From Tubulanus polymorphus (taxonomy: Eukaryota > Animalia > Nemertea): 64,000 nucleotides of DNA. The notes below the pieces were generated by a model. It had not been told where the DNA came from and ran no database searches. It was given only the letters and a program-made list of their open reading frames with translations. The translations under genes were made by a program, and so were the position numbers. The stretch spans positions 17,657,807 to 17,721,806 of the forward strand of contig NC_134031.1 of the NCBI RefSeq assembly GCF_964204645.1. Direction: 5' to 3'. Shown here one piece after another: positions 21,846 to 51,709 of the stretch. Position 1 is the stretch's first letter; the number at the start of each line of letters is the position of its first letter.

Positions 21846-22150
21846 TTATATACACAATTCACGTCCGGAGAGGACTGGTTGTGATGGATGTATGCTTCGG
21901 ATGTGGCGCTGACAATTTTCGCTTTGCGAGAAACGCTTGTTACAATACGGACAACCGTACGGCTTGACCCCGGTGTGCGTCCGAATGTGTTTTATCATAT
22001 TCATCCGCGGGGCGTGACGCGGGCAATACGGGCACTTGATCACCAACACCGGATCGCCGAGTGATAAATCATCCGCCATACGACCTACAGGTGGCGCCAT
22101 AGTTGAATTTGCCAACGGCGGAGGCTTCTTTACTTTCGGCGGTTTCGTAA
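21846..22150 (-). CDS. Alternative terminal ZnF exon 1 (most distal), 2 fingers
   Basis: tttgcag|TT ACG; [26 protein letters not shown]; TAA. Confidence 0.85.
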
Positions 22151-25100
22151 CTGCAAAAGAATAACGTTGGGAAAAGATTTTAGAAGTTTTGAAAAAACTA
22201 CGTATTCAACAGGAGAAATCATAGCATAATTCTTTGGATTACATGATTCAAATATGACAAAACGGGGGCGGATCCAAGGGGAGGGTGCAGGGGTGCCTGC
22301 CCCCGCCTAAAAATGTCAAGTTGACCAGAAACTTTTACAGCAAAACGAAATAAAATACATCAAACTGATACCTAAACAAATTTGAATTAATAAGATTTTA
22401 ATTTTCTCTATATTTCCAAAAATGAGTTTATTTGTGCCCTTTTTCAATTATATGATATGTCCTATTTGCGTGTGCAAACCTTCCTGAATTAGACCCTAGA
22501 TCCGCGCCAGAAACTTAAGGAGGTAGGCTATAGTGTGTGCACAGTCACCAGACGGGCGAAGAACGAACTAGATTATTCCCAAAAAGAATAACATACGAAA
22601 CAAAGTTATTTCATTTTATAGGTAAAGGGATGAAGATTTATTTTTCATTATAAGATAACAGTAAAATACAAAGGCCGCATAAAGGAATTCTATCTTACAA
22701 CGATCGATAACGACAGTTCTTTTAGAAACGCATTTCAAGATTTACGTAAAGCGGATATAGAAGGTGGATATTGTTTGTTCATTTAACCCCTGTTGTCGGT
22801 GCACGTTGTCGTTCGGTCGATGATATCCTGTTGATCATCTCTACAATTTCTGGATCGACGACCAGCTCGCTGGCGGGTGGGATCATTTGGCGGGGGTGAT
22901 GGGAACGAATGTGACGTTGACAATTTTCGCTTCGAGAAAACTGCGTAAAACAGTGCGGGCATCCGTACGGTTTGAAGCCCGTGTGCGTCAATATATGCTT
23001 CTTGAAATTATACCCGGACAATACGATGTTTCTACGACAGAAAGGGCACACGCGAACTTTGGTCCTGTTGTCTTCAACGCCTAAAAATATCAAAATACAC
23101 AAATGAGTACAACTATATTGATCGCCCGCCGAAACCACGTGACAATGCATGACACGGAAAACAGGGGAATCTCGTCACAGACCGGAAGTTTAATCCGTGG
23201 AAGTAGAAGATTTGACCATGAACTCCATTTTTTAGAGTCCGTGATTTGACTAATTTCATAGCAGATGTTATGACCAGATTATTTGTTCCCCTGAATTTGC
23301 TGTTATTAAACGAGATTCCACTGTTCCGTATATAGGGCACGAATAACTTGAACCATACCGGGGACTACATGCAGGTCTGCAGTAGAACTGTCACGTCAGC
23401 TATGCTGAGCTCTCCTGACGGGGGCACACGGTGTCCTACGTGCACGGCCCGAATGTGACGTTGACAACTTTCAGGCCGCGAGAAAAATGTCTGGCAGTAC
23501 GGACACTTGTACGGTTTTGATCCGGTGTGGGTCAGTACATGACGTTTGAAGTTTGAAGCAGACGAACTGACGACTTTATGACAAAACGGACACGATTTTC
23601 TATAGGGATTTTCGCCGCCTGCAAAACCTACAAAACACGAAGTGAAAAACGATAACTCATGTATATACGGATAATATCTTCATCTTTATTCGATTATGAT
23701 TTGTCTAGAACGAAAGCATATATTTACACGTGAATTACGTATGTTTACAACGGTAAATGCAATACTTCAGATGATAAAGCCAACAGTTAAACAGATGCAG
23801 TTGACTCTAGTTTATAATTATGTTATCTGTAATAAAATTGATATCGAAAGTATGAAAGGATACATGATCTAAAAAAACAATTCATCTGCTATCATTAGAT
23901 AACGCTGAAACAACTTCAACAATATATGTATGCGTAAACTATTCTTTAAAAAAAAATTTTATTTCACTTTTTACACGAAATGATCAATAAGTATTTTTCG
24001 GTAGTGAAGTCCTAATCGTTTCTAAGTCGCTAAGTAAGTATCCATTCCGCACGAGGTCGTGATTAGAGATCGGAGGATGACAACTATTTCGGAGAGAACG
24101 ACATTATATTCATTCGGTTTGAAGACGGCACTGGTTGACCGGGGTGTATAGCGAGGATATGGCGTCGACAGTGTTCACCGCGCGAAAACAGCAATTGACA
24201 GTACGGACAACTGAACGGACGCGCCCCCGTGTGTGTTAACATGTGTCGCCGGAAATTCGAGGCGTACTTCGATATTTCTTTCGCGCAGTAAGGACATCGG
24301 TAGGTTGCCTTATCTGCAAAACACGAGAGAAATTTTAAAGAGATATAGTTTCGCATATTCCAGTTATTACAATCCTGTATTACGGGTAGACAAACGAAGC
24401 GGTTTCGAATGATTGTGCATTTACTGCCGGGTGCGGTTTGTGCCTGTGAAAGTGGTTCGGTCTTCAAATCAATGAAAGTGGTTCGGTCTTCAAATCAAAG
24501 CTTTACAATCGTCGAGTAAGCAGGGGAGCTATATCTCGTACATAGTATTGTATAATTATATTGTTGTAGCCTACAACCGTCATTTGAGTCGATGAAATCA
24601 TTAACATACAGAAATGTCGTGGATGTATATAGCACTGTTAAAAACTACATGTATCTTTTCCGTCGCATCTTTCTACATGTTTCTTCATGTTGCTATGGTC
24701 AGAGTACGTTTTATTACATTTCGGGCATTGGTACGGTTTAATTCCTAAATGCACCCGCAGATGGCGCCGATAATTGCCGACATAATTAGGCTGGAAAGTC
24801 TTCCCGCAGAAGTGACACGAGTAGACTTCCGTCGTTTTTGCCGACAACAGCCGGATCACTTCTGAAACGACAACAAACGGAAAGCGATTTAACAAATTTG
24901 CTAAGGAATTCACAAAACGAAAAACAAATATCTCCTTCATTTCGCTGCTGGGGAAATAGCGGTAACGCCGAATTCGATGAACTGCACTGAACGAGCTTCT
25001 TCAGATTTCAAACGAAAGATCAAAATAAAAGCGGAAACTCAAAAAGATAAGCTAAAAACTATGATTTATTTGTGACCATTGAATAAATACATACATACAT

Positions 25101-28100
25101 ACATACAAACATACATACAAACAACATTTGAAATAATCTCTTCGCAAAATCCGAGATCTGTTCAAAAAGAACCGAAATGCATCGTGCGCATATGTCGTCG
25201 CAAATTGCTTTTGTCAGAAAAACACTTCTGACAAACCGGGCACTGGAAGGGTCGTTCACCGCTATGAGAACGAATGTGAATAGTAAGAGAGTGCGTGGAT
25301 GGAAGATACCGGCCGCATTGGTGGCATTGATGGCGAAGTTCAGCGCTGCTGATTTCTGCAGATCTAGCCGATGTATCTCTGATACGGCGCTCTAGATAAG
25401 TACCAACTTGGCCTGAAAGGACACAAGCGCATAAGAAAACCTATATTAATGATGGTTAACTTATTGAAATAGGGTCGCTAATTCTTTAGTTAAAAGGGTT
25501 AATGGAGTGAAATAATGTCTAGATGGAGGAGGTAAGAATAAGCAGATGTCACAGACATCGACGGGTTCCCACAAACACACAGCCATCTTGTCAAATAAGT
25601 TCTTAACACGACACAATACATGAAGGGTCTACAATGAAATGTCTTAATTCACGAAATGTCACAGACATCGATGGGTTCCCACAAACGCACAGCCATCTTG
25701 TCAAATAAGTTCTTAACACGACACAATACATGAAGGGTCTACAATGAAATGTTTTAATTCACGAAATGTCACAGACATCGATGGGTTCCCACAAACGCAC
25801 AGCTATCTTGTCAAATAAGTTCTTAACACGACACAATACATGAAGGGTCTACAATGAAATGTCTTAATTCACGAATCGAGGCGCGAGTATTAAAATTTCA
25901 CGTGAAGTATAACGTGTCCTTGCAGATGGTGTTTACGAGAGAACGCTTTTCCGCAAATCGGGCAGACGAACGGTTTGATGCCGGTATGCAATTTCTCGTG
26001 CGTGCGAAGGTTTCCGGAACACGAGAAATGTTTATGGCAAATTTCGCAAACGTGAGCTTGACGAGCAGACGGCGACGAACCGCGAGGTCGTAACGGATTT
26101 TGCTCTACACGCCTGGTTAAATTCCACGCTAGCGAACTAATTGGGTACACGCCACCAATGTCTGAAAAATATCAACAGGAATGTCCTTTTAGTTTCATGG
26201 ATGGAAAAATTTTCGTTTTTTTGTTCAATTGCAAAACGTCGATATCGTAATCTTCTTCTATTTTGATCATGGTGCCATCACAAAAAAAACTTTCCTCCGT
26301 TTTTAAGTAAAAAATAAACTGAAACTGAAAGACTTAATTCTATATGATAACTCGACCATTTATTGAAAATATCTTCTTTTTACATAATATTTGCAGATAC
26401 ATTATTTCACAGATACCGGTACTCCATTTACAAACGATTAACAGTTCAAATCGATTAACATGAGTTTACAATAAGACTTTTTCTGGTCTCCTGAAGTTCG
26501 TAGCAAAGATGATCCACATTAGAATACTAATTTCTTTACTATCTATAGCCTTCTCTATACCTAAAACATTTTCTTTTGCTAAGAAATTCAAGTAAAAGTT
26601 AACATAGCATAAAAACTAACCTAAATAAAAAAAAAATAGAATAACACGCTGGTTACCACCAGTCGTGGCAGTGGCGGGCGTCAAACAGCCTTTTTCAAAT
26701 AAAATACGATCAGTAACAGTTTTCAGGAGATTTCACCCTTTACCTTTCAAATAAAGCAAAAATCACGGTTAAGTCCTCAAGTTAAAAAATTCTTATTTCA
26801 ATAGTAATCAGTTTTTCTCAGAATAAAACTGCAGCCTAACAAATATTTGTATATATACATTTCAAGAGAACAGTTGAGAGGCAACTCATGTTTTTTTGTA
26901 GAGGGGGGGGGGGAGTGAGGGGAGGGAGTCTTGAAAAAAGTTCAAGCTACAAAAAAGAAATGCGTATATTTTTTTCTCGTTACCCGTGTAATTTCTAGAA
27001 GCGTTGTATTTGTTTGTGTATATTGTGGAACGAGTTCATATGATTCTCCAAGTGGTGTTTACGCGAAAACGAACGGCCGCATTCGCCGCAGCCGAACGGT
27101 TTGATGCCGGCGTGCAGGTTCTCGTGCGCTTTCCGATTGAACAACGTCGAAAACGTTTTATCGCACATGCTGCACGCGTAACGCGGCTTTACGCCGGCCA
27201 CTCGCGTCGTCGATGGATTTGTACGGTCGGTCGGTCGCGGGTATTCAGAAAGTTGCCATTCGAGCCGGTATTCTGAAAGTACAAACGATGAAAGTGCCAT
27301 CACAACATCACTCACTCAAACACATATAATAACATATCGCGTGTATCTCTAGCGAGGATTTAAATCTTTTTCTCTGTTTTAAAAGAAAGAAAAAACAACA
27401 TCAGCCAAATGCGAACAACGCTAGCGGCGCCGCCTACTAACAAAAATTGGCTATGTCAATATGTACAAGAATAGAATGGTCGACCGATCTACGCGCTTTC
27501 CGTTCCCGGCATTACGTGAATAGTTGTTAGACTTCGTCACAGGAGATCAGTCCGAAAAATTGCTCGTGAAAGAAGCTGTCACGCGTAAAAGCAATAATCA
27601 GGTCGCGCTAAGATCCAATCCGATTGTCTGCGATTCAGACTTAAGAACGCTGATGTCACGTCGCGAGGTTGTTGTTGGATCTTTGCTGCACTCACGACGC
27701 TTAAAGTCATGTGATGCATACATCGCTGTTCATCGGCGGTTGTAAGTACACTCACGTCACGTAAGATCTGATCGTCTTAAGATATAGAACATGTCCAAAC
27801 AGCTTAAGTCTGGTTAAGTAAGATCTTATGCGTGCCGTGTTAGGCATGTAAACGTTCGGAATCTAGGAAAAAACCATAGAAAATCTTTCTCAAGGTCGAC
27901 TGACGGACAATTTATGCACGAGTCTTTGGTGACGATACAAACTACTGGACTGAACGAAGAACCTTGAACAGAGGGCGCAGTAATACGGTTTAACACCGGT
28001 ATGGGTGTTCTCATGTTTACGACAGTCAGCAGCCGAGCCGGACAATTTCCCGCATACGTAACAACGATGCCCCGTTTCATCGTTGCTGTTCCAAAGGGAC

Positions 28101-31100
28101 CTCAACTCGGCGCCGCCTGAAAAAAGCCGGAAAAAATTTCATCAGTTTTTCAATCGGTGGCAAGACAAATAACGCTAACAGGGATTCGGGGTTTTTTCAT
28201 GCGGGGCAAGACGGGGTCAGTTTCAAGGTCGGTCGGTCGGACGCGAGTCTGGTCAGCTAGTTCAGTCCTATTGTTTAGTAGTCGTCAGGGCGTGAACATC
28301 GACGTCAGGATGTTTGTTACGGACGTGACGATACAAGTTACTGCTCTGCGAGAATCTCATCAGGCAGAAATCGCAACTGAACGGCCGCGCGCCTAGATGA
28401 GTGAGTTCGTGTTTGAGACAGTGATCCTTGCGTCGCGACGGTCGATCGCAAAACCGACAGTGAAATGTGTTATCTGGCTGTCGAAACAGAGTTTTGCCAT
28501 TCAGAATTGTTCGAAGCGCGACCCCTGAAAATAGGCAAAAACAAACTTCGATCAATTCACTGAAAAGCTTAGTCATTGTTCGTACAATCAATTAATGTAA
28601 ATTTTTTCCCCCTAATTTTTGGTGGGAAGGAGAGGGGGCAACCGCTGTAAAGTTCTTAAAGTAACAATTGAAGTATTATCATTAATATCACGCAACACAT
28701 TCAACCGAACAATCGGGAATTCGATGGCAGGATTTTCGCCCCAAAGATGACGTTACAATAACACGCATACGAGTACAACAATGAGATTAATCGGACCACG
28801 CGACAAAACGCGCGATAATCCGGCGAACGAATAAATCCGATTAACGCCGATAAACGTCGCTCATTTCCAGTCGAGACGATAAACCGAACGATCGGTTAAT
28901 TTCAACGATTATGCGATAGGCGCATGTGTCTCTTTAAACTGCTGTATCTGATATACCATCGTTTGCACAATACGCAGGTATACGTGTGAGTCGGAGCCGT
29001 GTGCACTTGCTCGTGTTGAAGACAGTTCGTTCGGCGTGTAGACGTCGCGCCGCAGTTGTAACGACAGTGATACAGGCCGTCCGCGCCGATTACCAACGGG
29101 AATCGCGGCCCTTCTGAAAATAACCATTAGAAAATTGATCAGTCCGAGCGAATCCATATATATATTTATATACATATTTAGATGCTATATATTCATATTC
29201 AGATCAAGTGATGAAAATTTTCGCACTCGAAAATGATTATTCATCCAGTCCATAACAAATAACATTCAGTCTTCAAACCATCGAACCATATTTACAGCAT
29301 ATACGAACGACTCGTATAGATCATTCTCGAAGTTGAAAATTAGACAATGAGGAGGTTCCGTCGCCTGGTAGGAACCACTCCAGTACATATAACCCATACC
29401 TTTGGCTCTATATCGGTAGAAACCCTTTTCCTCGCGGGCATCGTTTCAGTTTATGAATAAGTTTCATGTGGCGGTAAAAATTTCCCGAATGGTTGAACGA
29501 TCGGTCGCACATTTTACAAGTGAATGGTTTGAATCCGGAATTTATATACATATTTAGGGGGTACAACTGAGACTATGTTCGCGGTCCGATGAAATAGCGC
29601 CGTCAATAGCCGTATTTCGTGTTCATAATCGTATGAAGCTTGAACACCTGGCCGTTCGTGTCCCACTGTTTATTATACCCGCGTAGACACAACCGGCAAA
29701 CATACGGCACGACCTTCCTACTGACGATTCGACGAGACTTGCAGTAGTTCGGTTTACCGCAAGAACTGCACGTTTCCTCCGTGTGCGGCGTCTTATCATC
29801 CGACCGAGCGACGACCGATCTGCCTGAAAAACGTGAAAACACCGAGAATGAGATGAAGCGATAAGAGATATACGGATGAATGTTGCGACACCACCACCGC
29901 GTATCGAACATCATCGCGCTACTGAAAACATTTCGGTAAGTTTCCTCGAGAGTCTTTTAAAGAGTCCTCCGGAAAGTCATCCGATAAAAACAACTATGGT
30001 TATACGTGTTACCGGATGAACTTGAAGAATAGTTCCGTCATCGAGTAGGTGGCGTTCTGGTTTTCGCGGAAACAGCGCATTGTTTCGGACAACACCTGAG
30101 TAGTGTCATAATTAAACCGATTTATTCCCGTCGCTGCACGTTTGTAGATGCTGTGTCAGACCGATCTATTGCCAATTGGATGGTGAGAAATCAACAAAGT
30201 ACAACCGTGGATCCGATATTCGATCGGTTACTCGAGGAAATACAGCCGGTCGCTGATATCGAGAGCTATATAAGGACTATGTTTAGTTGCGGGTGACGAT
30301 TTGTGACGGTTTTATCGAAAACCTCAAACGAAAATCATACGATAAACCTCCTCTGAATCGACATTATCAATGGCGACCGAATGTACAGAACGTAGGTGGC
30401 GCCGGTAACTGGAGCTTTGCGTGAAAGTGTTGCCGCAGATTTTGCACTTGTACGGACGATCTCCGACGTGTATGCGTTCGTGGATTTTACGATACGAATT
30501 GCTTTGACACAGTTGACCGCAGAACCGACACTGTTTCGTCCGGGGTTCGCTACCTGAAAAATACGTGAGCAAATCAAAGATATATCATCATCCCACTATC
30601 TTAAGAGAATATTTAAATCTGATTGATCGAATTGATTGATCACCGGTTCTCCAGCAGTAACAGTCACGAAAAAATCCTCAGCAGTCTCGAGTGTTCTCCT
30701 GAAAGCATCCGATTAATGAGGATTATGATTATGATTTGTTCCGCGACATAATTCTTCCTCAGGTCCTCGGCCGGCCACCGATCTGATTTAACTCCTTCGA
30801 ATTGACAATCAACGATGACCGAATGTACGGAACATAGGTGGCGCCTGTAACTATAACTTCGAGTGAACGTGTTTCCGCGGGTTTTACACGTGAACTATTC
30901 AACTAGGGGTTCACAACTGGAAGAGGCGAAAAACGAGTCAGTTCTCATCTTACTTTTCCTGCTAGAAAGTATCAGTGGAAAATATCAGTCAGGCATTCGA
31001 AAGCACATCTTTAAAAAGCAACCCATTCACTTTATAGCAATCAAAATGGTAAAACCAAATATCATCTGAACTAAGATTCTGTCATAAGCAACGGCGTATC

Positions 31101-34100
31101 TGTTTAAAAAAAAATAGATTTCATTCGTAATCATCCCCTATTCGGACAAAATTTGATGAAATCTTCAGAAAAATTCATACCTAGAAAAACATCGCACCAG
31201 CATCGCTTAGAAAAATAGAAAATTGAACAAAATATTAAAATAAATGCCTGTTGATAACAGCACAACTTCCCAATCAAAAAATATTGCTTCTTTCCTACAA
31301 TACGCACATTTTTATTTACAAGAATAAATCCATCAACATTTACACGGATCACTTTCTGGAGTTCAACTATTTTTCCGATCATGACCTTGGCCCTTGTTTC
31401 GTCTGATCTTTGCCGCACGATTTATTTTGAAGGAACACGTAAACTTCTTCGCCGTCGATCGTCTTCGCCGCCATCGAGTGCAACACGCGTAGATGGCGCC
31501 GGTAGTTACCGCACTGGTTGAACGTTTGACCGCAGACATGGCAGCCGTACGGTTTAATACCGAGGTGTATGCGTTCGTGTACGATGCGATTGTATCGGTT
31601 TCCGTGCGGTTTTCCGCAGTACGCGCATCGATGCATCGGATTCGCGTCCGCGACGCTTGCCTGGCCGTCGTCTTCGCTCGCCGGGTTTCTCGTCGGTTTA
31701 TACGCGGCGCTATTCGGGCGGCTCCAATCTGTTGACGTCGCTGAAAATATTCAGACGAAAAACACATCACCGGAATATCTAATAGATGAGTTAGATCCAA
31801 GGGTGCATTGGGGCTATTTTTGTGGGACATATTGCAAAGTCTCAGAAAGCGCCTAAAACGATGTAAGTTAAGCCTAACAGGTCGCGCTATGACGCGCTAA
31901 GATCCGATCCTATAGTCTGCTATTTGGTTCTTAAGAACACTACTGAGGTCGATTCGGCCAAGACTCATTTATTGGATCTTAGCTACACTTAACAATTGAC
32001 CACGATCATTGAACCGAGTGTTTAAATCATGTGATGCATACATCGCCGTTCATTGGCTACGAACTTACGATCGGTCGTAAGTGCACTCAGGTCACATAAA
32101 ATCCATTTCGATCCGAAAGAAATGATAGAATCCGATAGAATATGTCCGATCGGCTTACGACTGGTCTACGATCAAGTACACCGCAAAAATCGGAGACTGG
32201 TCGCTGATTTCCTACGTTGACCGACCAGAGTTTGGGCTTTTCTCGATGTTTTCGGTAAAAAAAGCGATCACTTAAACTGCTTCATCATATACATAGACCC
32301 GGTCGCAGCTGCACTCATATACATAGACCCAGTCGCAGCTGCACTCATATACATAGACCCGGTCGCAGCTGCACTCATATACATAGACCCGGTCGCAGCT
32401 GCACTCATATACATAGACCCAGTCGCAGCTGCACTCATATACATAGACCCGGTCGCAGCTGCACTCATATACGTAGACCCAGTCGCAGCTGCACTCATAT
32501 ACGTAGGCCCAGTCGCAGCTGCACTCATATACATAGACCCAGTCGCAGCTGCACTCATATACTACGAGAATTTATCAAATGTTTCACTCGATGAAGCAAT
32601 AAACCTCTACGGAGTCGACTGTTTTCGGTTCCGCCGCGTGAACGTTGCGTAAATGACGTCTATAGTTTCCCGATTGATTGAACGTTTTTTGACAAAGCCG
32701 ACAACGAAACGGTTTATCTCCCGAGTGGACTCGTTCGTGGATTATACGATGCGCGTTACTGACGTTCCGTTTACCGCAAAAACGACACGGGAACTGAGCA
32801 GCAGCGGCGTCGGCGGCGGCGTCGCCTTCTGACGCGATCCACGCGTCCGCCAACCGGTCGACTAACGAGCGTCCTGAAAATATGCCAAAAATACCGGTAT
32901 GAGAGAGAAGAACATTCGAATGATCTGCAATCCCTGTAACGTACTTTCCTGCTGGCATCGTTTGATCATAAATTGTTAAGTCATAAATCATCCTTTTGAG
33001 TCGAATCGTAAAGAAGGGCTATATATATAGAACAAATCGATCTCCTAATTCAACGACTCAATCGGTAGAAACCCGTCGCTTCCCTGGCATCGCTTCAGTT
33101 TATGAACGAGTCTCATGTGTCGGTAAAAATTTCCCGATTTGTTGAACGACCGTGCGCACATTTGACACTTATACGGTTTATATCCGGAGTGTATGCGCTC
33201 GTGTATGATACGATGCGACTTGCTCGGGTTCGATTTGCCGCAAAATCGGCAACTATGCGCGCCGCCGGCGCCCTCTTCGGTCGACGTGTTGACTACCAGC
33301 GCGCGATAATAATCGGACAGTTGGCAGTCTGAAAAAAACAGCAAAAAGAGAAACGCATGAAGTCGCGATTTCGAAGGGCATAAAAAACATCGGTAATTCA
33401 AGTGTTTCAAGAGCTGTTTTTTCATGACTACAAACTACGTCGTTTATCGATCAAAATAGACTAAATTAACGCAGAAATTTAGAAACAACAATTACATTTT
33501 TTTTATTCATAATGAATCAATAAATAACATTTTTTTTATTCATAATGAATCAATAAATAAAACACATACTCTATAACTGGAAAAATTATTTTCGTAAATT
33601 GTTATCTTATGACCCTCACGTTGTATTCGAACACATTTCAAAAATCAAAAATAATCAACGATCATGAGTCTCAAGAAAATTAATACCTTGTTTCTCATTT
33701 CTACTGAGCTTTAAAAAGTTGACACGGTCGACTGCATTTCTACCCTGTACATTACCGTTTCGAAATCATGATCAAGGTAACCGTATCAGACCCAGCAGTT
33801 ATAGAAATGAACCGATTACAAATTTTCATTGCAGTTTACGAAATGACCCGACCCATAATGAGAAACAAGGTATCATTTTTTGAAGCCTGAATTACAATAT
33901 TTATAATTCATAATCATAGCACTGGCTGATAGAATAGACAACTTCGTCTAAAAAATTGTATCAACATTGAATGAACTAAACAGCGTTTTTAACGATCCAG
34001 ATATAACAATCTATACATTGGATATAAAACCAGTAAGCCCATTTTATTGATTACACATTGAATACAAAGAAATATCGATATGAAGAACAGCTATTCTCCT

Positions 34101-40100: not shown

Positions 40101-43100
40101 TATCTTATTTCTCCTTCGATTCCATGCAATACGAACATGAACCATAACATTATTCCCAGCCTTTAAAAGATCAACTATTTAATGATCAACTACCGAACTA
40201 AAGTAGCAATCTGTTTAAGTACATCAAAAAATTGATGTACAGCCACAGTAATAGATACAAATAAACTAAGGTTTTTTTTAGGTGTCACTGGTCCGACTGA
40301 TTTCTAAAATGTCCTTTGCGGTGACGTTGCATTGCACTGGATTGATTGAACGATTTCTCGCAGATATCGCATCGATGCGGACGAACGCCGAGGTGTATAT
40401 TCACGTGATTGCGCAATCCGGACGACGTCTGAAATCGTTTGCCGCACATTTCGCAGCCGAACTTCCGCGCCATCGAATACATCGGATTCGGAATCATGCC
40501 GTACGACGTCGAGTCTCCCGCGCTGCTTGGCGACCATCTCGTTCCTGCAACAAGCCAAAGTGAACAACCTATTAGACGTTAAATCAAAACTGCGAAGGAC
40601 ATCACATCTTTTTCCTGCTGAACACGCTGTTAAAACCAAAAGTATTTCAACATCAAAGTTTAAGAATTTTGCACCAGGTTTTATCGTCCACTATCAATGC
40701 TGAGTGAAAAGTGGGTTCAAGCCCAACTGGCTGCTTACAGTGTGCGGGCAACACTTCAAAGGCCCTGGTCCCGTGCGAGGTTAAATGAATGATCCAATTG
40801 GGTTAGGGTTAGTCTTGGGAAACCAAGATCCAAGCGACGTAAAGCCAAAAACAAACAAATTAGAGTCCGCAGATGAACTAGTTTTTTCATCATATCAAAA
40901 GCAATCACGATCGCGAAGAATTAATTGTACTCGACTGAATGCCGCCGTCGATTTTATTTGTCCTTAAAATGCCGCCTACGATGACATCGCATGTTGCTGG
41001 CCTGCGCAAACGCCATCCCACAAACATCGCACTTATACGGACGCAATCCGAGATGTATATTCATGTGATTGCGCAATCCCGATTTGTCGCGAAATCGTTT
41101 GCCGCAAATTTCGCAGCCAGCCTTCCGTTCCATCGAATACAGCGGATTAGGACAGATAGCGTACGTCGAGTCTCCATCTCCGCTCGCCGTAAATCCAATT
41201 TCTGTAACGAGCCAAAGTGAACAACCAATTAGATGAAACATCAAAACTGAAAAGGCCATCACATCTTTTCTCCATCGCGTATTGTGCAAGTTTTTTTTCA
41301 TGTCATAGTTTAAGAAAGAAAAACCCGCAGTTGCAAAAACTATCGTAATCGCGATCGCTTAATTACCAGTCGTATAATTAAGTTCGATGTTGTTATTGAT
41401 TAGATTTATCCTTAAAATGTCGTCGCCGATGACAACGCATGTTGCCCGATTCTGTAAACGTCATCTGACAAATATCGCACTGATACGGCCGTAAGCCGAG
41501 GTGTATGTTCATGTGATTGCGCAATTTTGTTCGGTCGGGAAATCGCTTGCCGCACATTTCGCAGCCGAACTTGCGTTCCATAGAATATATCGGATTAGGA
41601 CTCGTGTCATACGGCGAATCCCCGGCCCTCCCTGACGGTCCTCCAATTCCTGTAACAAGTCAAAGTGAAAGATGTCAAATCTAGTGCACACGATAGTAAC
41701 AAGAAAAACATCGAAACAAGAATTAGATCTTGCCCACGCACGCATATGTTTCTTTAGTTACCATGACATCGCGCACAGCAATTCATGTTTCACAACACCA
41801 GGCAGTTACAAGGCCGGCGAGAAGTTTCTGTTTCATATTTATACCATGCAGTATGCAATAGGCATCAGATCACAGTTAAAATGACTCCCGACATTTCCCC
41901 TTGAAGAAAGAGCTATTCGCGACAATAGGCTTCGGTCTCCGATGATTTCATGTATACTCAATACGCAACAAGACTGCCATAAATTACGAAGTCAAAATTT
42001 TTTTTGTGAACTCATAAACGTGTTATTTTATGTTGAACTCACCAGCAGAACTAGGAGTTTTATACAATACCGGTATATATGTTTTTTTAAAATGTATCTA
42101 TATTGTAATATTTACAAAAGGACAAATGAAATTTCTCACGGAGATTGAAACGGCACCGATTTAAAATGTCCTTTACGATGACGTTTCATCGCGCTCGATT
42201 GACTGAACGTTTTTTGGCAAATGTCACATATATAAGGACGCAATCCGAGATGTATATTCATGTGGTTGTTTAACCCATTCGAATGGCGGAATCGTCGGCC
42301 GCAAACCTCACAACCAAACTTGCGTTCCATCGAATAAATCGGATTAGGACCGACAAGGCCCTCTTGCGCGGTCGAATCGCCCAACGTACCGATCATCAAA
42401 CCGTATCCTACAACAACAAGGGGTAAACGATGAATATCTGAATTAATAATCGTCAAGTTTCGCACGAGCATTCCGATTCATTCAGGGGGATCTAAGCTGC
42501 TTTCAGTATTGAACGATATTCCGGAGATATGAGTGCGCACTTCATTTTTTTCATGCAGCTCATTTCACAAACTTCCTTTCCGTAGAAAAAAAATACGAAC
42601 AATCTATCTATCTCACGGAGGTTCTCACTGGACTAACGCGAACTTAAAATGTCCTTTGCGGTGGCGCAACATCGCGCTCGATTGACTGAACGACTTTTTA
42701 CAAATGTCGCATACATGCGGCCGCAATCCGAGGTGTATATTCATGTGATTGCGCAATCCACATTTGTCGCGGAACCGCTTGCCGCACATTTCGCAGCCAA
42801 ACTTGCGTTCCATCGAATATATCGGATTCGGATTGGGAATTATTCCGTACTGCGAGTCTCCCTCACTGCTCGCCGATCCTCCATTTCCTGTAACAAGCCA
42901 AAGTGAACAACCTGTTAGATCATCAACGTTGAACAAAAGGCAATTAGAAAGATATCTCGTCCCCGTGTTCTCTCCATACTTAAGCTTTGCTAACTCCATA
43001 ATGACAAAAGACTAAGACATAATTAACCGAGATTGATTATTAATATTAAACGCAAACTTGGTACATTTAATTTACACAGATGTATATTTAAAGCAGAACG

Positions 43101-46100
43101 AATGAAGTGTCTCGTATAGATCGTCAACTGGTTCGACGAACAGACATAAATGTTCCACGCGGCTAGTTGATGAGCCCCGCAAAAATGTACCATATGTCAT
43201 AAACATGGGCAACAAACTGATCCGCATGTAGTGTAAAATTGAGAATAACAAATTCTGCCACCATATATCTGCGCCTAAGAATAGATCTGGTTCGGTCAGA
43301 TACGATTATGCGAATCTCAGTTCGTAAGCCAGCAGAATAAACAACTATCCAAGCCAGGCAGGCATCTTTAAGCCTAGCGCACATCGACACTGCGATTGGA
43401 GACAACTAGTTGCAAGGCAGTTTTCGGCGCATGAGAGGAACTGGCTGGATACGATCAGTTCCTTGGATGTGTCGATGTGAGCGAGCTTACGATTGGTAAG
43501 CGTCGATCTATCTCCAGTTCCAGCCAGTTGCCCATGTTCTACTTTTGAGCAACTGGTTGTACTCAATCGCAGTCATATCCGTCGATGTGCGCGCTCTGGA
43601 TCTCGACGATCGACACGCGCCATGCAGTTGCTGCAACTGACCGGTTGTAACTAGATTTCGACGTGCGCGGGGTAATCGTTCGGTAGCAACTAGTTGTCTC
43701 CAATCGCAGTGTCGATGTGCGCTAGGCTTTAGTTCCTTCGTTGTACTATGTTTGTCTAAAACAACCCGAGCAAAAATTTTAGTTTTATCGTTCGAAACGT
43801 TATTAAGCACCGCTTTCTTCTTAAAGTGTCGCTAGCTGGTTCCGACGCGCAAATCCGCTACATCGTCATTATTTACGCGAAGTTCGCCTCTTCGCCGGTT
43901 TATCGTCGAAATGAAGCTTACGATGCCGCGACATCGTACCCGACTGTCCGAAAGACATTTGACAAATGTCGCACCGATACGGCCGCACGCCGAGATGCGA
44001 GTTCATGTGATCGTGCAAATGCGAACTGTAAAGAAACCGACGGCCGCAAATTTCGCAGCCGAATTTCCGTTGCATCGAGTATATCGGATTTGGACCGATA
44101 ATACGCCGCGAATCCTCCGCACTGGTCACCGAACGTCCATTTCCTGTAACAAGTCAAACAACCTTATTATACGTGATACCACAAAGACGTTTTCAGTTCA
44201 TCTCACTTATTGAAAACAGATCTCGGTTTAAGTTTTGGCGTCGATGTATTGAGCATGCTACACTTATTAATAGACCGAAAAAAAAAATCAAAATTTCCAC
44301 CAATCGCAAGAAGTTCATTTTCAAATCATGATCGGTCTTTAAAATGTCTCCTACGATGACGCGACATCGTACCGGACTGTCCGAACCACATTTCGCAGAT
44401 ATCGCATTGATACGGCCGCACGCCCAAATGCGAATTCATGTGATCGCGCAAATTCGAACTGTAACGAAATCGGTGGCCGCAAATTTCGCAGCCGAATTTA
44501 CGTTCCATCGAATATATCGGATTAGGAGCGATATCGCGACGTGAATCTTCAGCGGCGCTGCTCGACGGTCGTCCAATTCCTGTAACAAGCCAAAGTGAAC
44601 AACCTTATTATATTCGAAAGACGAAATTCGAAAAATGTCACACCTTTCAAGCTCCCTGCACTAGTTTTATTAGAGTTTTAAGGTTGTTTTTTTTAAATCA
44701 ATTATATCTCATGTTTGAAACAGTATATTTTTGTATAGAGTTCAATGTCGTCGCGATGTGTGTCAAAATGTCTCCTCTTAAATATTGCACTTATACACCT
44801 AGATACAAAACCAAATAATTACCGTATCTAGTTTTGTCACGAAATTGGCAGCCGCAAATTTCACAGCCAGCCTTCTGTTTGCAATGAATAAATGGGATTA
44901 AGGCGGATGTCTTATCATCCAATCACTGCAATAAGGCTAAGGATACAACTTCCCCTAGTTTATGGTATATTCATGGGGCAGATGGTAAAAATGTGTAATC
45001 GTGTCACGGACAAGACCTCCTTATAGCGAACGATATACATAAATTGATCGTAATCGATTAAATCAACAAAGATCAGTTAAAAAACGCTAACATTTTATTG
45101 AATTTTATAGAAAAGATCGTTATTCCTCGACGCATTCTTCCAAGTCGGATTTTGCCTCCAGTTTGTAAATTGTTTGAAATTTCATCCACGATATCTTTTT
45201 ACTGAAAATTACATCGCAACGTCGACATCAATTAAATTCAAACTATTCAATCAAAGTAGCACCTAGAAGGCACCGTTCAAATAAACTAGATGCGTCCTTT
45301 ATATCCGTGTTGGTATAAATGACAGGTTCAACTGTTATTTCTTTCTCACATTCTCCCAAAATGTAATCGCCTTAAGAGTTTGCGAAATGTTTGAACCGGT
45401 ATCCTCGATATTTCTTTTTTGTTTAAAGTAACACCGCGACATCGATAATAACTATACAATCAGCGCAGCACGCAGAGCGTTTAATAAAACTATACAATCA
45501 GCGCAGCACGCAGAGCGTTTAAAAAACTAGGCCGTGTTCCTTGCGTCGGTGCTGGTATAAATGACTGGTTTGACTAAACGTTCGACTGCACACCGTACAC
45601 GCGTACGGCCGCAAGCCGAGATGCATCGATAGATGATTACGCAATCCCGTACGACGATGAAAGTGCTTGCCGCAGATCTGACAGCCGTGCGGTCTCTTCT
45701 TAGCCAAAACAGCAGCAGCAGCAGCCGTAGCAGGGTTCACGAATATGTACCCTGCAAGGAAACGAGACTCTTGATGAGTACATTACAGTTGATTGCCGTT
45801 TGTACCGGTTGTTGGGATTTTATTTTCAGGAAGAGGGACATTGACGAATGTGGCGCCATCTATATGCTCAAGTGTTCGATCAAGTTACATCCGAAAGAGA
45901 ACGAACTAAAACTGATAGGAATGTTTTTTTCTTTCGGTTTCTCCGCAGCCAAACGAGTTACTTTAGGAAATGCAATTCCAGTCGATGGTCCTTCCGTTTG
46001 TGCCGATAAAGCGTGCTCGTTTGCGAATACGATTTGCCGCACAATTCGCAACGATGCAAACGCAAGCCTAAATGCATCGACAGGTGATTCTGCAAACCGG

Positions 46101-49100
46101 CGCGACGATGAAACCTCTGGCCGCAGATCGTGCACGCGTGTCGACGCCGCGGGTCTTCGTGCTCGGCGAGCAGCGCCGGCCGGCCGCGCTTTTTACCGAA
46201 CGGCTGGAAATTGTCGAACACGTCGAGAATATCTTGACCTAGAAATAGTCAAAGTTGAATACATCTTATCCACCGATAACTCGAAATACAATATTCTTAA
46301 TTAGAAAACATTCCTCAAGTGGATAGTTTAGTGTCTTACTATGACTCGGCACTTAAAACATTCGCTACACGTATATATCTATTCCGTCAACAAAATTAAC
46401 TCCGCGTCATTTGTCAAATTAGTTAAATCGTGAATTTTCGGAGTCGTATGTTATAAAAGTAACGTTTAGAAAATCAGTTTCACCTTCTGGTAAAACGGAT
46501 AAAATCTTTATAACTATTAACTCAAAATACGGGCTTTCAGGTCGACATTCTCTAGACTCCATAAATTATGCAGATGCCATTTCCTAAAGTTTACCTAAAC
46601 GCGTAAATTACAGCAACGACCAGAATATGAGAGACATTTTCTAATCTTTTTATTTATAGAATCTCAGATGACAAAAAATGAAACAAAATACAACGAAACG
46701 ACCGACACCTAAAAAACCAACGGACGCCGCGATCTTCACGAGTTACGCCGATGGGCAGCGGCGCGGACGCTTCATCCGTCGAAAAACTCTCCGCATACAA
46801 AATAAAACCAAAGACGAAAAATCTGCCAAACGGTCCCTCAATGTTTATCGATGAACGGTGCGCCGATGTCGATAAAGCGTGCCCGGCTGACTGAACCGTT
46901 TCGCGCATATATCGCACTGGTAGTTCTTCAAGCCGATGTGGATCAACAGGTGGCGCTTCAGGTCGCTGCTCTGGCGGAATTTCTTACAGCAAATGCTGCA
47001 CTGGTGTTGCTTCGAGTCGAAGTGCGTCGCCATGTGCCGCGTCGCGTTCGTTTTCCGTACCGTCTTGTGGCAAATCGAGCAGACGATGTACGTCACCTGC
47101 GTGTAGAATCGCAGCAGTTTGCCTCCTGCAACGATCAGAAGAAAAATTTCGATGATTACAAGATACATCCGATCATCCGATTCTCTTGACCACCGAAAAA
47201 AATCATCATCATCATCGTCATCATCATCATCATTCTTATCACCATCACACACGGCAAACACCAACACCAACTCCTCGGATACAAAAATCAACCCTAGATA
47301 CGTAAAACAACCACAACCGGGAGGGATCGAGGGAAAGTAGAAAATCCCGAAGAAAGTCGTTTACTAAAACCGTGACCCGATCCGTACGTGCAGGTTGAAA
47401 CCCTAGTTATACGCGAAAACGCGACTGACTTCTTATCACCCGAGAATGACGTTCTTACGGATACTTAACGATCGCCATGGCAACAACAACTAAGTCGAAG
47501 CTAGTGTATAATACGCCGCGAGTTTTTTCCGTTCGTTAATCCTTTCGCCGCTCTAATAATAATCTGATGCTGTATTCCAGATTCTCACGCGGCTTTCACT
47601 AATATCCGTACGGTATCGCGAACTGTCACCGCTAAAAATTCACTTATTCGGTTTGTTTTTTTTTTTTTAATCTACGAATGAGACGCGCGTGGGATACGAT
47701 TGTTTACTATTCGACGCACGCACTGAAAATTCAAATTCATTTCCAGCAGGAACAAAAACAAGAAAATCAAAACTACTGCATAATAATAAATATGTGTTCC
47801 TCGTATCGGGGATAAAAATTGTACGAGGCGCGATTCTATAAACGATGTTGAGAATCGAACCAGGGAATTCAAATCCATAATTCGACCCACAGGCTCAAGA
47901 CGTTTTCTCCTCCAAATCGATGGTCGATTTCTAATGTAATATTCCAAATTTTTTCAACGGCGTTTCATCGAACCCGATAACACTAAAACGACCCGCGTCC
48001 GCGGCCTGCGTCCGGTTTGTTGCAATTTTTATCCGCCGATACGATCGAGGTTCAGATGATAATGACGAAAACGCATGATTTTTCACCATGACAAATCATC
48101 ACTATTAAATCAGCAGAGAACGATATATAACGATTTGTCGATCGAACGATCAGCTATCAAATACTCACCTTCCCGCGCGCACACGTAAAACAGAGAGATC
48201 GAAACATTTCCCATTAAACTGAGATTAAGACTTCCGAGATAGGATAGTGTGAGCGCCATCAAACATACAGCGTTCTTACTCGCGATAACTAATTGTAAAC
48301 TGGTGATTATTATAAAAATATTTGTCTAATGCTTAAGTTTTTCCTCCAGTTTATTCATCACACAGTAGGAGTAATCACGTATGTAAGTTAATATCTTGAT
48401 AGCTGATGGTTCGCTTAAAAAAGGGTCTACGACAGCAATATTTGCGCTTTATCGAAAATACCAGCTCGGTGAAATCGCATTAATGAAAATACCACGTCAA
48501 TTAAGTCTTAGTTCCCGAGATGCGAATCAATTTTGGATTTCGATTTTCTTTTAGATACCGAACAGATATTGCTTTCTGATAGACCGCTATACGGCTCTTG
48601 TACGCTTATCCAGAATCAGACAAAATGATATTTAATAGAATTACTTTCTTTCGATCATTCGAGCAAAATATGCAATATCAGAAGATTCGCGCTTGTTCCG
48701 ACCATAAGATTGATTCTCATGGAATGGATGCATTTTCAATTATCTGATAGGCGTACACCAGACCATATCGTACAGATTCCAGAACAACCTTAAGATCAGA
48801 TTTCAATCCCACTGAGTGTCATGTCATTTACAATTTCAGCTCCATGGAATTCCATCAATGGTCTCAGCTGTGTGAAACATTCTTACGGTAACAAACTTCT
48901 GCGCAATGTTTAAAGATTAGACTTTCCACTGCACTCATCGAACAAACTCATTTTAAGTGGATATGGCCCTAGTATTTTGAAACTCCAAACATGGTTCCCA
49001 CAGTAGTATGAATTCAAAATTCCCAAGTTTTTCCCAAGTATTTCATGGGTGATTTTTCAATTTTCCCAAATGGAAATGAACACATCGTCATTCAACAGTC

Positions 49101-51709
49101 TATATTTTACTGGTGACTGGTTGATAAAGGTGATTTTGAAGTGAAACTGCTGAAGAAAGTTGCCCTTGGCAAATGCAATGTATGAAATGTAATGAATTTC
49201 CCAAATATTTCCCTGATTTGAGGAAAATTTTTCAAATTCCCAATTATTTCCAAACCGGGAATTATTATTTCAAAATTCCCAAATTTTTCCCAATTTCCCT
49301 GTTCTGTGGGGACCATGTCCAAATCCAATGGATACGCATTTTAAAGACCCCCTCATAGATTCCATTGCGTAAAACTGTCACTATTTCATACTGGACAAAA
49401 ATAAGAAAATCTGCTTGTTCTGAAATCTGTATTTAATAATGAAAGTAAAGGATGAAAATTCGAAACCTACCGGCTTGATTAGGTGGTGGTTGAATACCGG
49501 ACGACGTGGAAGGCATAGGATTATTGGCGTGAGGTTGTCTCGGACGTCTGGCGCTGGTTTGTTTCGGTCGTTTCGGTGCGGTGTATTGTCTCGGCGTACG
49601 CTGCGTCATCGCTGGATTATACAGAGCGGCATTCTGCATCATCTGCTCCGAATATTGCTGCTGCTGTTGCTGCATCTGATGTTGTTGCTGCTGTTGCAGC
49701 AGCTGCCCCGTTTCGTCGTACATGTAATTGTTGTAATCGGCGCCCTCGTCTTCCTCGTCGTCGTCGCTGAGACTGATCACCTCCGGTTTCACGTGAACGC
49801 TGCCGACCGACGCCGCTAGCATCTGTTGATTATCGTACTGCGACAGGTAAAGTCCGGAATTCGGGTCGACGTCCGACATCGCGTAGCCGCCGCTGCTGTG
49901 ACTACCCGAATTCGACGGCACGCGACCCTGGAAGCTCAGCGATGACACGACGTTCTCCGCGTCAATGAGATTTTGATTTTGTTGAGACGTAATCGTTGCC
50001 GACGCTCGTCGACGTTTACGCTTCGAATGCAATTGTTGGTGAGGGAATGACTGACGAGGTGTTTTCGGCACCGCAGACGTTAATTGTTCGTCGTACGCGT
50101 TTGATAAATCACCACCAGGTGGCGCCTGGTTGTCGTGTTCGCCATCGCCGTGTTCGGCCACGGGCATTGTCAGATCGTTTTCATTATTTTCGCCGACGTT
50201 CGGTTCGTCCTGTTCGAACGCGTTATCGTCGTGTTCGGATAAATCGGCACCGGCAGCGAACTCCGACTCCTGCAGAGCTTTAGTATCGCTGTCGCTGAAC
50301 GCGGAGACGCTCGTCTCCATTTCCTGGTGGTAGAGTTCGTGTGTCGGGTCGCTGAGACGACGTTTTAACAGCGCCCGTTCGTGATTATTAATCTCCGGTT
50401 CGGATTTCACATTCCGTCGTAACGAACGCCCTGAATCAGAATGAAACATGAGTTAACACTTTCAAGAATATTTCTGGGATTAAAATATAAAAACCTATTA
50501 ATTAATACATTTCTATGAATCACACATTGATGATGAAATGGCAATGGCATTTCCAAATTTTCTGAGTTTTGGCAAAAATTTGTCATATTCCCTGAATTTT
50601 CCCCCACTTTTTATGTTGGGGCACAAAATTTGAAAAATGTCTCTCTTTACGAACGCACAAACTACAACTGATTCGTATCTCATGAAACACATATTGATAA
50701 AGCCTGGCCAATAGCATCATATGAATCCTCCAAGTTTGTCGATACTTTTTTTTGGACAAAATATGTCAAAGTATTCATTTTTCGACCTTTCCCCAATATA
50801 TTCTAGATTTGTCTGATCTGCGTTGTTTCCCTAATTTTGTTCATGCTTTACCACACAAAATTCCCTGAGGTTTTAATCTCGCAAATCCCCAAATATTTTT
50901 TTGACATTTTATTTTCTATTTCTATATAAGCAGGTTATACATTCAGAGTGAAGCGTCAAATTCATCGGCTCTTTTACTTTTTCAACATTAATGTTTTTCT
51001 ATCCATGACCTGTTTCAATAAAAAACTTTACGTGAAATGAAACGTTCTTACCGGGTGAATGTCTGGCACGTCGATCCTGCCATTCTAACCACGTCGGTTC
51101 ATCTACCTCGACGACTATATCGGCTATCACATCCAGGCGACTTTTCAAACATTCTTTCAAGTCAGCCTCATTCACTTGGAATGGTATGTCTGTAAGAAAT
51201 TAAATTTTAGAGATGCAAAAAATCTAAATCGTAGATTAAAACTAATCATCAGGGCCCGGTTTCACAAAAAAGTTTAAGCTTAAATCGGTTAAGTTTGAAT
51301 TGTTGTCCTCATTGAAAACATGAAGTAACCAATGGCAATTACACCAAATATTTGAGTTTAACTTTTTTTGTGAAACTGGGCCCATGTCTATTTGCAACAA
51401 AAACGAGCATTCATTGTTTTTTCATTATCAGGTAGATTTAATTTTAGTATTTTCACAAGTTGATTAAAATGATAGTGAAACTGAAGCGGAATACTCTGCT
51501 TCATAAAGAATAGAATTCGTAAACTGGCTTGTATTCTAGGGAGATCATCAACAACCAGGAAGTAAAATGTAACGAGCCAGTTTACAAGCCTCTGTTTGTG
51601 ATCTTTCACTTTAAAATCCAAAAAATGATGCTCGTTTTAAAACATTTTTTGACTAATAAAAGACAATTAACGAGTCAAATGGTTAAGAAAACTTACCAAG
51701 AAGCATCAT
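21846..51709 (-). CDS. Gene A: zinc-finger transcription factor locus with constant 5' exons and an array of >30 alternative 3'-terminal C2H2 exons (lola/mod(mdg4)-like layout, no BTB)
   Basis: The constant part is 1111 nt (370 codons + 1) and ends CAAGCCG|gtaggt; every intact downstream cassette starts with a phase-1 AG acceptor and ends in its own stop. Confidence 0.85.
22779..23080 (-). CDS. Alternative terminal ZnF exon 2, 2 fingers
   Basis: tttttag|GC GTT; [26 protein letters not shown]. Confidence 0.85.
23365..23618 (-). CDS. Alternative terminal ZnF exon 3, 2 fingers (absent from the ORF track)
   Basis: tttgcag|GC GGC; [51 protein letters not shown]; TAG. Confidence 0.85.
24084..24313 (-). 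CDS. Alternative terminal ZnF exon 4, 2 fingers
   Basis: tttgcag|AT AAG; [26 protein letters not shown]. Confidence 0.85.
24638..24861 (-). CDS. Alternative terminal ZnF exon 5, C2H2 + C2HC
   Basis: tttcag|AA GTG; [25 protein letters not shown]. Confidence 0.85.
25162..25412 (-). CDS. Alternative terminal ZnF exon 6, 2 fingers (absent from the ORF track)
   Basis: ctttcag|GC CAA; [50 protein letters not shown]; TGA. Confidence 0.85.
25546..25874. repeat. 110 bp tandem repeat x3
   Basis: Units begin atgtcacagacatcg at 25546, 25656 and 25766 and are nearly identical. Confidence 0.9.
25890..26161 (-). CDS. Alternative terminal ZnF exon 7, 2 fingers
   Basis: ttttcag|AC ATT; [25 protein letters not shown]. 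Confidence 0.85.
26995..27272 (-). CDS. Alternative terminal ZnF exon 8, 2 fingers
   Basis: ctttcag|AA TAC; [26 protein letters not shown]. Confidence 0.85.
27590..27815. mobile_element. Interspersed repeat; second copy at ~31875-32170
   Basis: Shared 'cgcgctaagatcc.atcc', 'cttaagaac', 'ttggatctt' and 'tcatgtgatgcatacatcgc.gttcat' blocks. Confidence 0.55.
27890..28116 (-). CDS. Alternative terminal ZnF exon 9, 2 fingers
   Basis: ttttcag|GC GGC; [26 protein letters not shown]. Confidence 0.85.
28268..28524 (-). CDS. Alternative terminal ZnF exon 10, 2 fingers
   Basis: ttttcag|GG GTC; [26 protein letters not shown]. Confidence 0.85.
28902..29113 (-). CDS. Alternative terminal ZnF exon 11, 2 fingers
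   Basis: ttttcag|AA GGG; CRYNC..HEQVH..CVLC..HMRLSH. Confidence 0.8.
29200..29541 (-). pseudogene. 5'-truncated copy of the cassette at 36657-36910 (finger 2 plus downstream flank), no acceptor
   Basis: Near-identical to 36453-36790; the insertion is flanked by an 18 bp direct repeat atttatatacatatttag (29164-29181, 29540-29557). Confidence 0.85.
29603..29823 (-). CDS. Degenerate alternative terminal exon: open frame, Cys pairs retained, His ligands mostly lost
   Basis: ttttcag|GC AGA; [31 protein letters not shown]. Confidence 0.55.
30324..30553 (-). CDS. Alternative terminal ZnF exon 12, 2 fingers
   Basis: ttttcag|GT AGC; [33 protein letters not shown]. Confidence 0.85.
30790..30916 (-). 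pseudogene. Decayed duplicate of ZnF exon 12
   Basis: cttccag acceptor, early TAG, finger 1 deleted; remnant [24 protein letters not shown]. Confidence 0.75.
31379..31740 (-). CDS. Alternative terminal ZnF exon 13, 2 fingers
   Basis: ttttcag|CG ACG; [33 protein letters not shown]. Confidence 0.85.
32286..32562. repeat. 30 bp minisatellite x9 (catatacatagacc(a/g)gtcgcagctgcact type)
   Basis: Direct tandem units with few substitutions and no spacers. Confidence 0.95.
32584..32873 (-). CDS. Alternative terminal ZnF exon 14, 2 fingers
   Basis: ttttcag|GA CGC; [33 protein letters not shown]. Confidence 0.85.
33045..33328 (-). CDS. Alternative terminal ZnF exon 15, 2 fingers
   Basis: ttttcag|AC TGC; [36 protein letters not shown]. 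Confidence 0.85.
33671..33883. mobile_element. MITE with ~27 bp TIR (ATACCTTGTTTCTCATT); related copies at ~3631-3925, ~17873-17952 and ~54990-55075
   Basis: Inverted termini and shared internal 'gacc...agttatagaaat.aac.gattacaaa'. Confidence 0.7.
34175..34407 (-). CDS. Alternative terminal ZnF exon 16, 2 fingers (absent from the ORF track)
   Basis: ttttcag|GA CGA; [64 protein letters not shown]. Confidence 0.85.
35076..35338 (-). CDS. Alternative terminal ZnF exon 17, 2 fingers
   Basis: ttttcag|GA CAA; [31 protein letters not shown]. Confidence 0.85.
35571..35798 (-). pseudogene. Decayed cassette of the GFLPI subfamily
   Basis: tttctag|AC TAC acceptor like exons 18 and 19; in-frame stops; remnants YRCKIC and KGFLPS*. 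Confidence 0.65.
36657..36910 (-). CDS. Alternative terminal ZnF exon 18, 2 fingers
   Basis: ttttcag|AC TAC; [31 protein letters not shown]. Confidence 0.85.
37422..37669 (-). CDS. Alternative terminal ZnF exon 19, 2 fingers
   Basis: tttttag|AC TAC; [31 protein letters not shown]. Confidence 0.85.
38937..39205 (-). CDS. Alternative terminal ZnF exon 20, 2 fingers
   Basis: ttttcag|GC TCG; [26 protein letters not shown]. Confidence 0.85.
39686..39945 (-). CDS. Alternative terminal ZnF exon 21, C2H2 + C2HC
   Basis: ttgtag|GA CAC; [37 protein letters not shown]. Confidence 0.85.
40285..40544 (-). CDS. Alternative terminal ZnF exon 22, 2 fingers
   Basis: gttgcag|GA ACG; [25 protein letters not shown]. 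Confidence 0.85.
40954..41201 (-). CDS. Alternative terminal ZnF exon 23, 2 fingers
   Basis: gttacag|AA ATT; [25 protein letters not shown]. Confidence 0.85.
41393..41649 (-). CDS. Alternative terminal ZnF exon 24, 2 fingers
   Basis: gttacag|GA ATT; [25 protein letters not shown]. Confidence 0.85.
42136..42407 (-). CDS. Alternative terminal ZnF exon 25, 2 fingers
   Basis: ttgtag|GA TAC; [25 protein letters not shown]. Confidence 0.85.
42625..42887 (-). CDS. Alternative terminal ZnF exon 26, 2 fingers
   Basis: gttacag|GA AAT; [25 protein letters not shown]. Confidence 0.85.
43371..43728. mobile_element. PIF/Harbinger (Tourist-like) MITE
   Basis: Perfect 43 bp TIR agcctagcgcacatcgacactgcgattggagacaactagttgc, with TTA on both flanks (43368-43370, 43729-43731). 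Confidence 0.85.
43869..44143 (-). CDS. Alternative terminal ZnF exon 27, 2 fingers
   Basis: gttacag|GA AAT; [25 protein letters not shown]. Confidence 0.85.
44326..44579 (-). CDS. Alternative terminal ZnF exon 28, 2 fingers
   Basis: gttacag|GA ATT; [25 protein letters not shown]. Confidence 0.85.
44760..44925 (-). pseudogene. Decayed cassette of the [10 protein letters not shown] subfamily
   Basis: attgcag acceptor; remnants [26 protein letters not shown] and RRHF, with frameshifts and deletions. Confidence 0.75.
45519..45751 (-). CDS. Alternative terminal ZnF exon 29, 2 fingers
   Basis: cttgcag|GG TAC; [26 protein letters not shown]. Confidence 0.85.
45958..46238 (-). CDS. Alternative terminal ZnF exon 30, 2 fingers
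   Basis: tttctag|GT CAA; [26 protein letters not shown]. Confidence 0.85.
46845..47125 (-). CDS. Alternative terminal ZnF exon 31 (most proximal), 3 fingers
   Basis: gttgcag|GA GGC; CSIC..HMATH, CSICC..HLLIH, CDIC..HRRTVH. Confidence 0.85.
48990..49317. mobile_element. hAT-like MITE
   Basis: catggttcccacag ... ctgtggggaccatg inverted termini; internal 'aaattccc' repeats. Confidence 0.6.
49471..50430 (-). CDS. Gene A constant exon 3: disordered acidic/Q-rich region with basic NLS-like cluster and SUMO-site/SIM-like motif
   Basis: attcag|GG CGT ... CAA GCC G|gtaggt; 960 nt open frame; [24 protein letters not shown], poly-Q. Confidence 0.9.
51052..51189 (-). CDS. Gene A constant exon 2: conserved N-terminal domain of unknown family
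   Basis: cttacag|AC ATA CCA ... TCA CCC G|gtaaga; [45 protein letters not shown]; conserved in genes B and C. Confidence 0.9.
51252..51383. mobile_element. Harbinger-like MITE
   Basis: gggcccggtttcacaaaaaagtt ... aactttttttgtgaaactgggccc inverted termini. Confidence 0.75.
51697..51709 (-). CDS. Gene A start-codon exon (coding part MMLL-; exon ~51737-51697)
   Basis: accATGATGCTTCTTG|gtaagt, phase 1; equivalent MLL exons exist in genes B and C. Confidence 0.75.

Follow-up and report, generated by a model that had tools for sequence, protein, structure and literature searches.

The 64,000 nucleotides of genomic DNA analysed here (the window) harbor what we read, with a probability of about 0.85, as a single transcription-factor gene making up to 31 isoforms, the constant donor at position 49471 being spliced in each case to a single alternative terminal exon out of 31. 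Use of this donor and its junctions to three of these exons (A01, A02 and A05) are seen in RNA contigs, and from these we infer a like use of the remaining cassettes. Each isoform would combine a common N-terminal interaction domain with a different two-finger DNA-binding end. The source of the DNA is the nemertean Tubulanus polymorphus, whose RefSeq proteins map exactly onto the window. We found no paper on this gene or on the family defined by its head, and the locus is apparently undescribed, mis-annotated, RNA-supported and of independent origin.

A six-frame scan returned 31 intact multi-finger C2H2 segments, all of them on the minus strand and confined to a span of 25.3 kb (47125-21846), the same count that a sequence-only reading of the window had given (Table 1). 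Two fingers are present in 30 of these cassettes and three in the first (A01), and every cassette carries its own stop, 69-119 codons past the acceptor. When, blind to phase, the best-scoring pyrimidine-rich AG ahead of the first cysteine was chosen from the open frame, it fell in phase 1 in all 31 cases, as compared to 64 of the 164 remaining AGs in the same stretches; the AG score was adjusted after a first pass, the initial untuned score having given 30 clear phase-1 cases and one tie. The earlier statements that all acceptors are in phase 1 and that several cassettes have no in-frame ATG before the fingers thus both hold, methionine being absent between acceptor and first finger in 21 of the 31. 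Between the last finger and the stop, 14 cassettes have no GTR, and in ten there is no A[AT]TAAA within 700 nt. No further cassettes were found in the 10 kb before and the 60 kb after the window.

Table 1. Positions of the constant exons and tails of the array gene, and of its two paralogues, within the window.
Feature	Position	Strand	Evidence
Constant exon 1, ATG 51709, phase-1 donor	51697..51737	-	own acceptor; equals N-terminus of XP_074655718.1
Constant exon 2, ~45-aa family-defining domain, predicted three-helix	51052..51189	-	sequence, profile, fold model
Constant low-complexity exon, ends at shared phase-1 donor 49471	49471..50430	-	sequence; donor use in X3
Tail A01, three C2H2 fingers	46845..47125	-	explicit joint to 49471 in run X3
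Tail A02, two fingers	45958..46238	-	X3 contig ends at acceptor, 30 letters unaligned
Tail A03, two fingers	45519..45751	-	sequence; spanned unspliced by A02 contig
Tail A04, two fingers	44326..44579	-	sequence
Tail A05, two fingers	43869..44143	-	X3 contig ends at acceptor, 29 letters unaligned
Tails A06-A11, tandem paralogues of A04-A05; acceptors 42887, 42407, 41649, 41201, 40544, 39945	39686..42887	-	sequence, tree; X3 joint 44531-49470 for A07 or A11 (most likely)
Tail A12	38937..39205	-	sequence; RefSeq GT..AG join 49471 to 39205
Tails A13-A17, one paralogue group; acceptors 37669, 36910, 35338, 34407, 33328	33045..37669	-	sequence, tree
Tails A18-A20, kin to single tails of genes B and C; acceptors 32873, 31740, 30553	30324..32873	-	sequence, tree
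Decayed cassette	29200..29823	-	phase-1 acceptor 29823, 72-aa frame, fingers without His ligands, then A14 copy
Tails A21-A27; acceptors 29113, 28524, 28116, 27272, 26161, 25412, 24861	24638..29113	-	sequence, tree
Tails A28-A31, one paralogue group; acceptors 24313, 23627, 23080, 22150	21846..24313	-	sequence, tree
Gene B: ATG 53132, domain exon 53250-53387, linker exon 53906-54832, one phase-1 two-finger tail 55244-55524	53097..55524	+	sequence, tree
Gene C: domain exon 57765-57896, linker exon 58406-59071, one phase-1 two-finger tail 62832-63280	57765..63280	+	sequence, tree, XP_074655555.1

The constant coding exons upstream of the array (51709-51697, 51189-51052 and 50430-49471) join into an uninterrupted frame of 370 amino acids that ends in phase 1, in agreement with the donor phase proposed earlier. 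A TGA lies in frame six codons upstream of the head ATG, which excludes an upstream coding exon, whereas the acceptor of the first exon itself implies a non-coding exon further upstream. The head domain contains two invariant tryptophans within about 45 amino acids, and an AlphaFold2 monomer model predicts three helices for it (mean pLDDT 86). Three fold searches with this domain gave nothing significant and no match at Z>=5; the weak best match of the monomer model, the beta-TrCP D domain (Z 3.8), is not significant either. Searches of the domain against Pfam, PDB sequences and the ESM Atlas likewise returned nothing significant, and a Pfam search of 18 family members gave no meaningful match, BTB and KRAB included. 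Word-indexed protein searches, in which blanks do not equal absence as they are length-limited, returned generic zinc fingers or the single known outside match only. The nearest BTB match on the contig lies more than 0.6 Mb from the head. A BTB identity of the head domain is ruled out by its sequence, its length (45 aa) and its predicted fold, and a BTB exon upstream of the head by the in-frame stop, such that the earlier claim of a head without BTB stands.

The linker exon that ends at the shared donor contains a basic NLS-like run, two SUMO-consensus sites, a SIM-like acidic motif and poly-Q. A SUMO-consensus site is found in 21 of 26 family proteins, and the basic run in about half. As pointers to function, the short motifs (basic run, SUMO, SIM-like) are suggestive only.

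The joining of head and tails was followed in four runs (X1-X4), available as contigs, that were aligned on 43600-49599, a region comprising the donor and five of the 31 acceptors. Run types were judged from splicing and coverage: X1, X2 and X4 cross the acceptors unspliced, as DNA would, and the joints of X3, the one RNA-type run, are absent in all three. In X3, an explicit joint with GT..AG ends (47125|49471) connects A01 to the donor. Two other contigs of this run break off at 46236 and 44142, leaving 30 and 29 letters unaligned, respectively. Their distances from the acceptors at 46238 and 44143, 2 and 1 bases, are as expected from exons whose first letters (GT and G) agree with those of the intron that follows the donor, and these ends represent junctions from donor 49471 to A02 and A05. 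A fourth X3 joint, 44531-49470, has non-splice ends. Since the similarity of A07 and A11 to A04 starts exactly at 44531, this joint is most likely a contig running from donor 49471 into A07 or A11 that was placed on the paralogue. X3, whose contigs lose rare forms, showed no junction to A03 or A04. The X3 contigs read across the stops of A01, A02 and A05, which makes these cassettes last exons and not links of a chain, and the A02 contig extends unspliced over A03, suggesting a common 3' end for A02 and A03. Last-exon joining as proposed from the sequence is thus borne out at three of the five acceptors covered by reads, and probably at one more distal cassette.

The cassettes are under purifying selection. 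Between individuals, as judged by X1 against the assembly, no more than 3 of 1324 coding nucleotides differ, as compared to 34 of 1650 non-coding ones (Fisher p 2e-6), and the paralogue groups show either a dN/dS of 0.15-0.23 or a saturated dS. Base-contacting residues show excess change in only three of five groups, and we make no claim of positive selection. In the tree, whose deep branches are without resolution, related tails adjoin (A02-03, A04-11, A13-17, A24-25, A28-31), which argues for growth of the array by local tandem duplication. A decayed 32nd cassette, missing from the earlier list, lies near 29823-29408. It is adjoined by a 342-nt stretch (29200-29541) that is a 96% copy of 36453-36790, the 3' half and UTR of A14, inserted at a distance of 7 kb. 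Between or beyond the cassettes lie an AT microsatellite of 193 units and two minisatellites (110 and 30 nt), at 12975-13360, 25546-25875 and 32285-32562.

RefSeq presents the locus in a different form. XP_074655718.1 (1283 aa, 19 fingers), which maps exactly on the window, runs from the head to A12 by a GT..AG intron and then chains cassettes down to 27893. It is the public model for the view that the cassettes are internal exons of one long poly-zinc-finger protein. However, the 13 joints between its cassettes include three whose GA..AG or AA..AG boundaries fall within a stop codon, two that jump by AT..AC from one mid-finger word to an identical one, two of the GC..AG type, and one that reads A21 in the wrong frame. 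We read this fusion of 13 cassettes by stop-dodging, partly non-canonical introns as an artefact. Serial cassette-to-cassette splicing, which the sequence-only reading had named as incompatible with its proposal, is contradicted by the RNA contigs that pass through the stops, and a chained protein is hardly credible. The same reading had been right in expecting a mis-annotated locus, but not in expecting it to be split into many small genes, as RefSeq has fused the cassettes into one long protein.

Another possibility is that only the few proximal tails are real, the distal ones either forming a silent reservoir or being independent small genes, each with a non-coding first exon or a spliced leader. 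The read alignment covered only the five proximal acceptors, and one decayed cassette exists. Independent genes would, however, need no uniform phase 1, and 21 cassettes have no methionine before the fingers; together with the donor joints in X3, this contradicts separate small genes, the other outcome that had been named as incompatible. Moreover, the distal tail groups show low dN at saturated dS, and the RefSeq join and the 44531 joint point to the use of A12 and of A07 or A11. We therefore hold a merely proximal gene to be very unlikely.

For the reading that we prefer, alternative terminal exons behind donor 49471, the joining is probably in cis: one pre-mRNA would be read through from the head across the array, and the tail would be picked at the 3' splice site by joining the donor to one of the 31 acceptors. 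Some neighbouring tails may share a poly(A) site, as the A02 transcript over A03 and the ten cassettes without A[AT]TAAA suggest. The same isoforms could also be made by trans-splicing, with groups of cassettes transcribed from their own promoters and joined to a separately transcribed head. This is how mod(mdg4) makes all 31 of its mRNAs (PMC13490949), and the cis route is a demanding one, as the transcript would have to bypass as many as 30 acceptors and some 20 poly(A)-like signals. Also, no pairing elements for a choice in cis were found: a search for docking/selector (Dscam-like) complementarity of the first intron to the cassettes, and for common upstream motifs, gave A/T-rich background only. 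On the other hand, all 31 cassettes lie downstream of the head on the same strand; orphan cassettes on the opposite strand were not seen in the window, where the plus-strand cassettes have heads of their own. Low-depth X3 contigs in the middle and at the far end of the first intron (48772-48928 and 47248-47612) weakly favour read-through. On balance, we consider trans-splicing unlikely.

Since a pair of zinc fingers recognises no more than about 6-7 bp, the N-terminal domain would most likely oligomerise the isoforms or recruit a cofactor, by analogy with the role of BTB in lola.

The locus works like lola and mod(mdg4), yet it stands outside that family, BTB being absent. In Drosophila lola, broad, fruitless and tramtrack (the TTK-type BTB-ZF genes), a constant N-terminal interaction domain and a disordered linker are followed by alternative 3' C2H2 exons, as is the case here, and lola has different zinc fingers in 17 of 20 isoforms (PMC11426971). 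The joining of one constant donor to alternative terminal exons, common to lola and mod(mdg4), is found here explicitly for A01, by contig ends for A02 and A05, and in the match of phases. Different DNA-binding modules on the variable exons, the other shared trait, are predicted from helix positions -1, 2, 3 and 6, at which the 31 tails carry 31 distinct residue codes. In contrast to the lola group, the Tubulanus head has no BTB, the host is a nemertean and not an arthropod, there are 31 tails, and the design recurs among at least 47 heads. mod(mdg4) also has one constant region with alternative 3' exons and 31 isoforms (PMC13490949), but it differs in carrying BTB, in having FLYWCH tails for the most part, in the spread of its exons over both strands and in the obligate trans-splicing of transcripts that start at internal promoters, whereas the Tubulanus tails are C2H2 pairs that all lie on one strand. 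The TTK-type BTB has not been found outside Arthropoda (PMC11426971), and with a head that is not BTB, the layout appears to have arisen independently in a nemertean, as had been surmised. The array probably grew separately from the arthropod BTB loci, through local tandem copying of last exons within a lineage-restricted gene family.

A likeness also exists to the KRAB-ZNF and FiNZ-ZNF genes, in which a separate exon ahead of the finger exon encodes a short, lineage-restricted N-terminal domain, and which have expanded in clusters (bioRxiv 10.1101/2022.11.29.518450). However, these families diversify mainly by duplication of whole genes with long arrays, while Tubulanus has many short tails per head. 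The Tubulanus head matches no KRAB or other Pfam family, and the contrast in sequence with FiNZ is drawn from the Pfam searches.

The window contains two paralogues of the array gene (gene A) that were absent from the earlier list. Genes B and C each consist of a head and a single tail, and in the tree these tails cluster with A18-A20; for gene C, no extra cassette was found within 60 kb past the window. The domain exons of A and B (51045-51260 and 53179-53394) are the arms, 1.9 kb apart, of an inverted repeat of 216 nt (94%), which suggests recent gene conversion; despite this repeat, the linker exons of the two genes are strongly dissimilar. The first exons of A and B, and a likely common promoter, sit between the arms, and an inversion between them would exchange these first exons. 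In gene C, the intron after the last donor (59072-59600) starts with about 30 tandem units, each with a donor-like GTAGGT, the first of which is that last donor.

Beyond the window, the head domain occurs at no fewer than 47 loci of the T. polymorphus genome, several of them with their own tail arrays. A profile of the domain run against 1.84 billion representatives gave 28 matches, namely 26 T. polymorphus RefSeq proteins, one probable chance match and one exon of GCA_044232415.1. This exon, on a 1-kb contig, is 80% identical and has the same acceptor position and phase, and these two genomes are the only ones in which the domain has been seen so far. The same layout recurs at C7:16.176 Mb, with eight phase-1 tails behind one head. 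On C8, zinc-finger match positions place at least 16, 14, 7 and 6 separate short finger frames behind four heads, where they may form tail arrays. C8:11.40-11.65 Mb holds about 15 near-identical heads in two divergent blocks, several with many short zinc-finger frames behind them, and the RefSeq poly-finger models of this region (1200-1600 aa) may share the chaining artefact. Two RefSeq isoforms of LOC141901926 (X1/X2) have 198 amino acids in common and then different finger arrays. Some tails may not be zinc fingers: at C7:16160640 on the minus strand, a phase-1 last exon used in RefSeq isoform X2 (XP_074655154.1), after a head and two finger cassettes, carries a homeodomain that among single-domain PDB chains is closest to CDX. 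Four family proteins (P0001, P0010, P0022 and P0028) have annotated C-termini with 0-1 zinc finger and no Pfam match, possibly representing other tail types.

In the searchable literature, large constant-plus-variable transcription-factor loci are documented only for arthropod BTB genes. That a spiralian carries an array of 31 tails on an unrelated domain suggests that the design is repeatable, with a DNA-binding repertoire grown through copies of last exons and not of genes. The locus also exposes a type of annotation failure, in which tail arrays are masked as single long poly-finger proteins and may for this reason escape notice in other genomes. The locus offers a second, independent system for asking how one of 30 distant last exons gets chosen, and whether trans-splicing results from the layout. 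A wider reading, possible though doubtful, is that of a nemertean combinatorial transcription-factor system of independent origin, with a new oligomerising domain on about 50 heads, well over 100 alternative tails including a Cdx-like homeodomain, and possibly trans-splicing like that of mod(mdg4); such a system would be the first counterpart of the TTK-BTB isoform system outside the arthropods. If this were true, it would be a natural test of the reasons for which such an architecture evolves.
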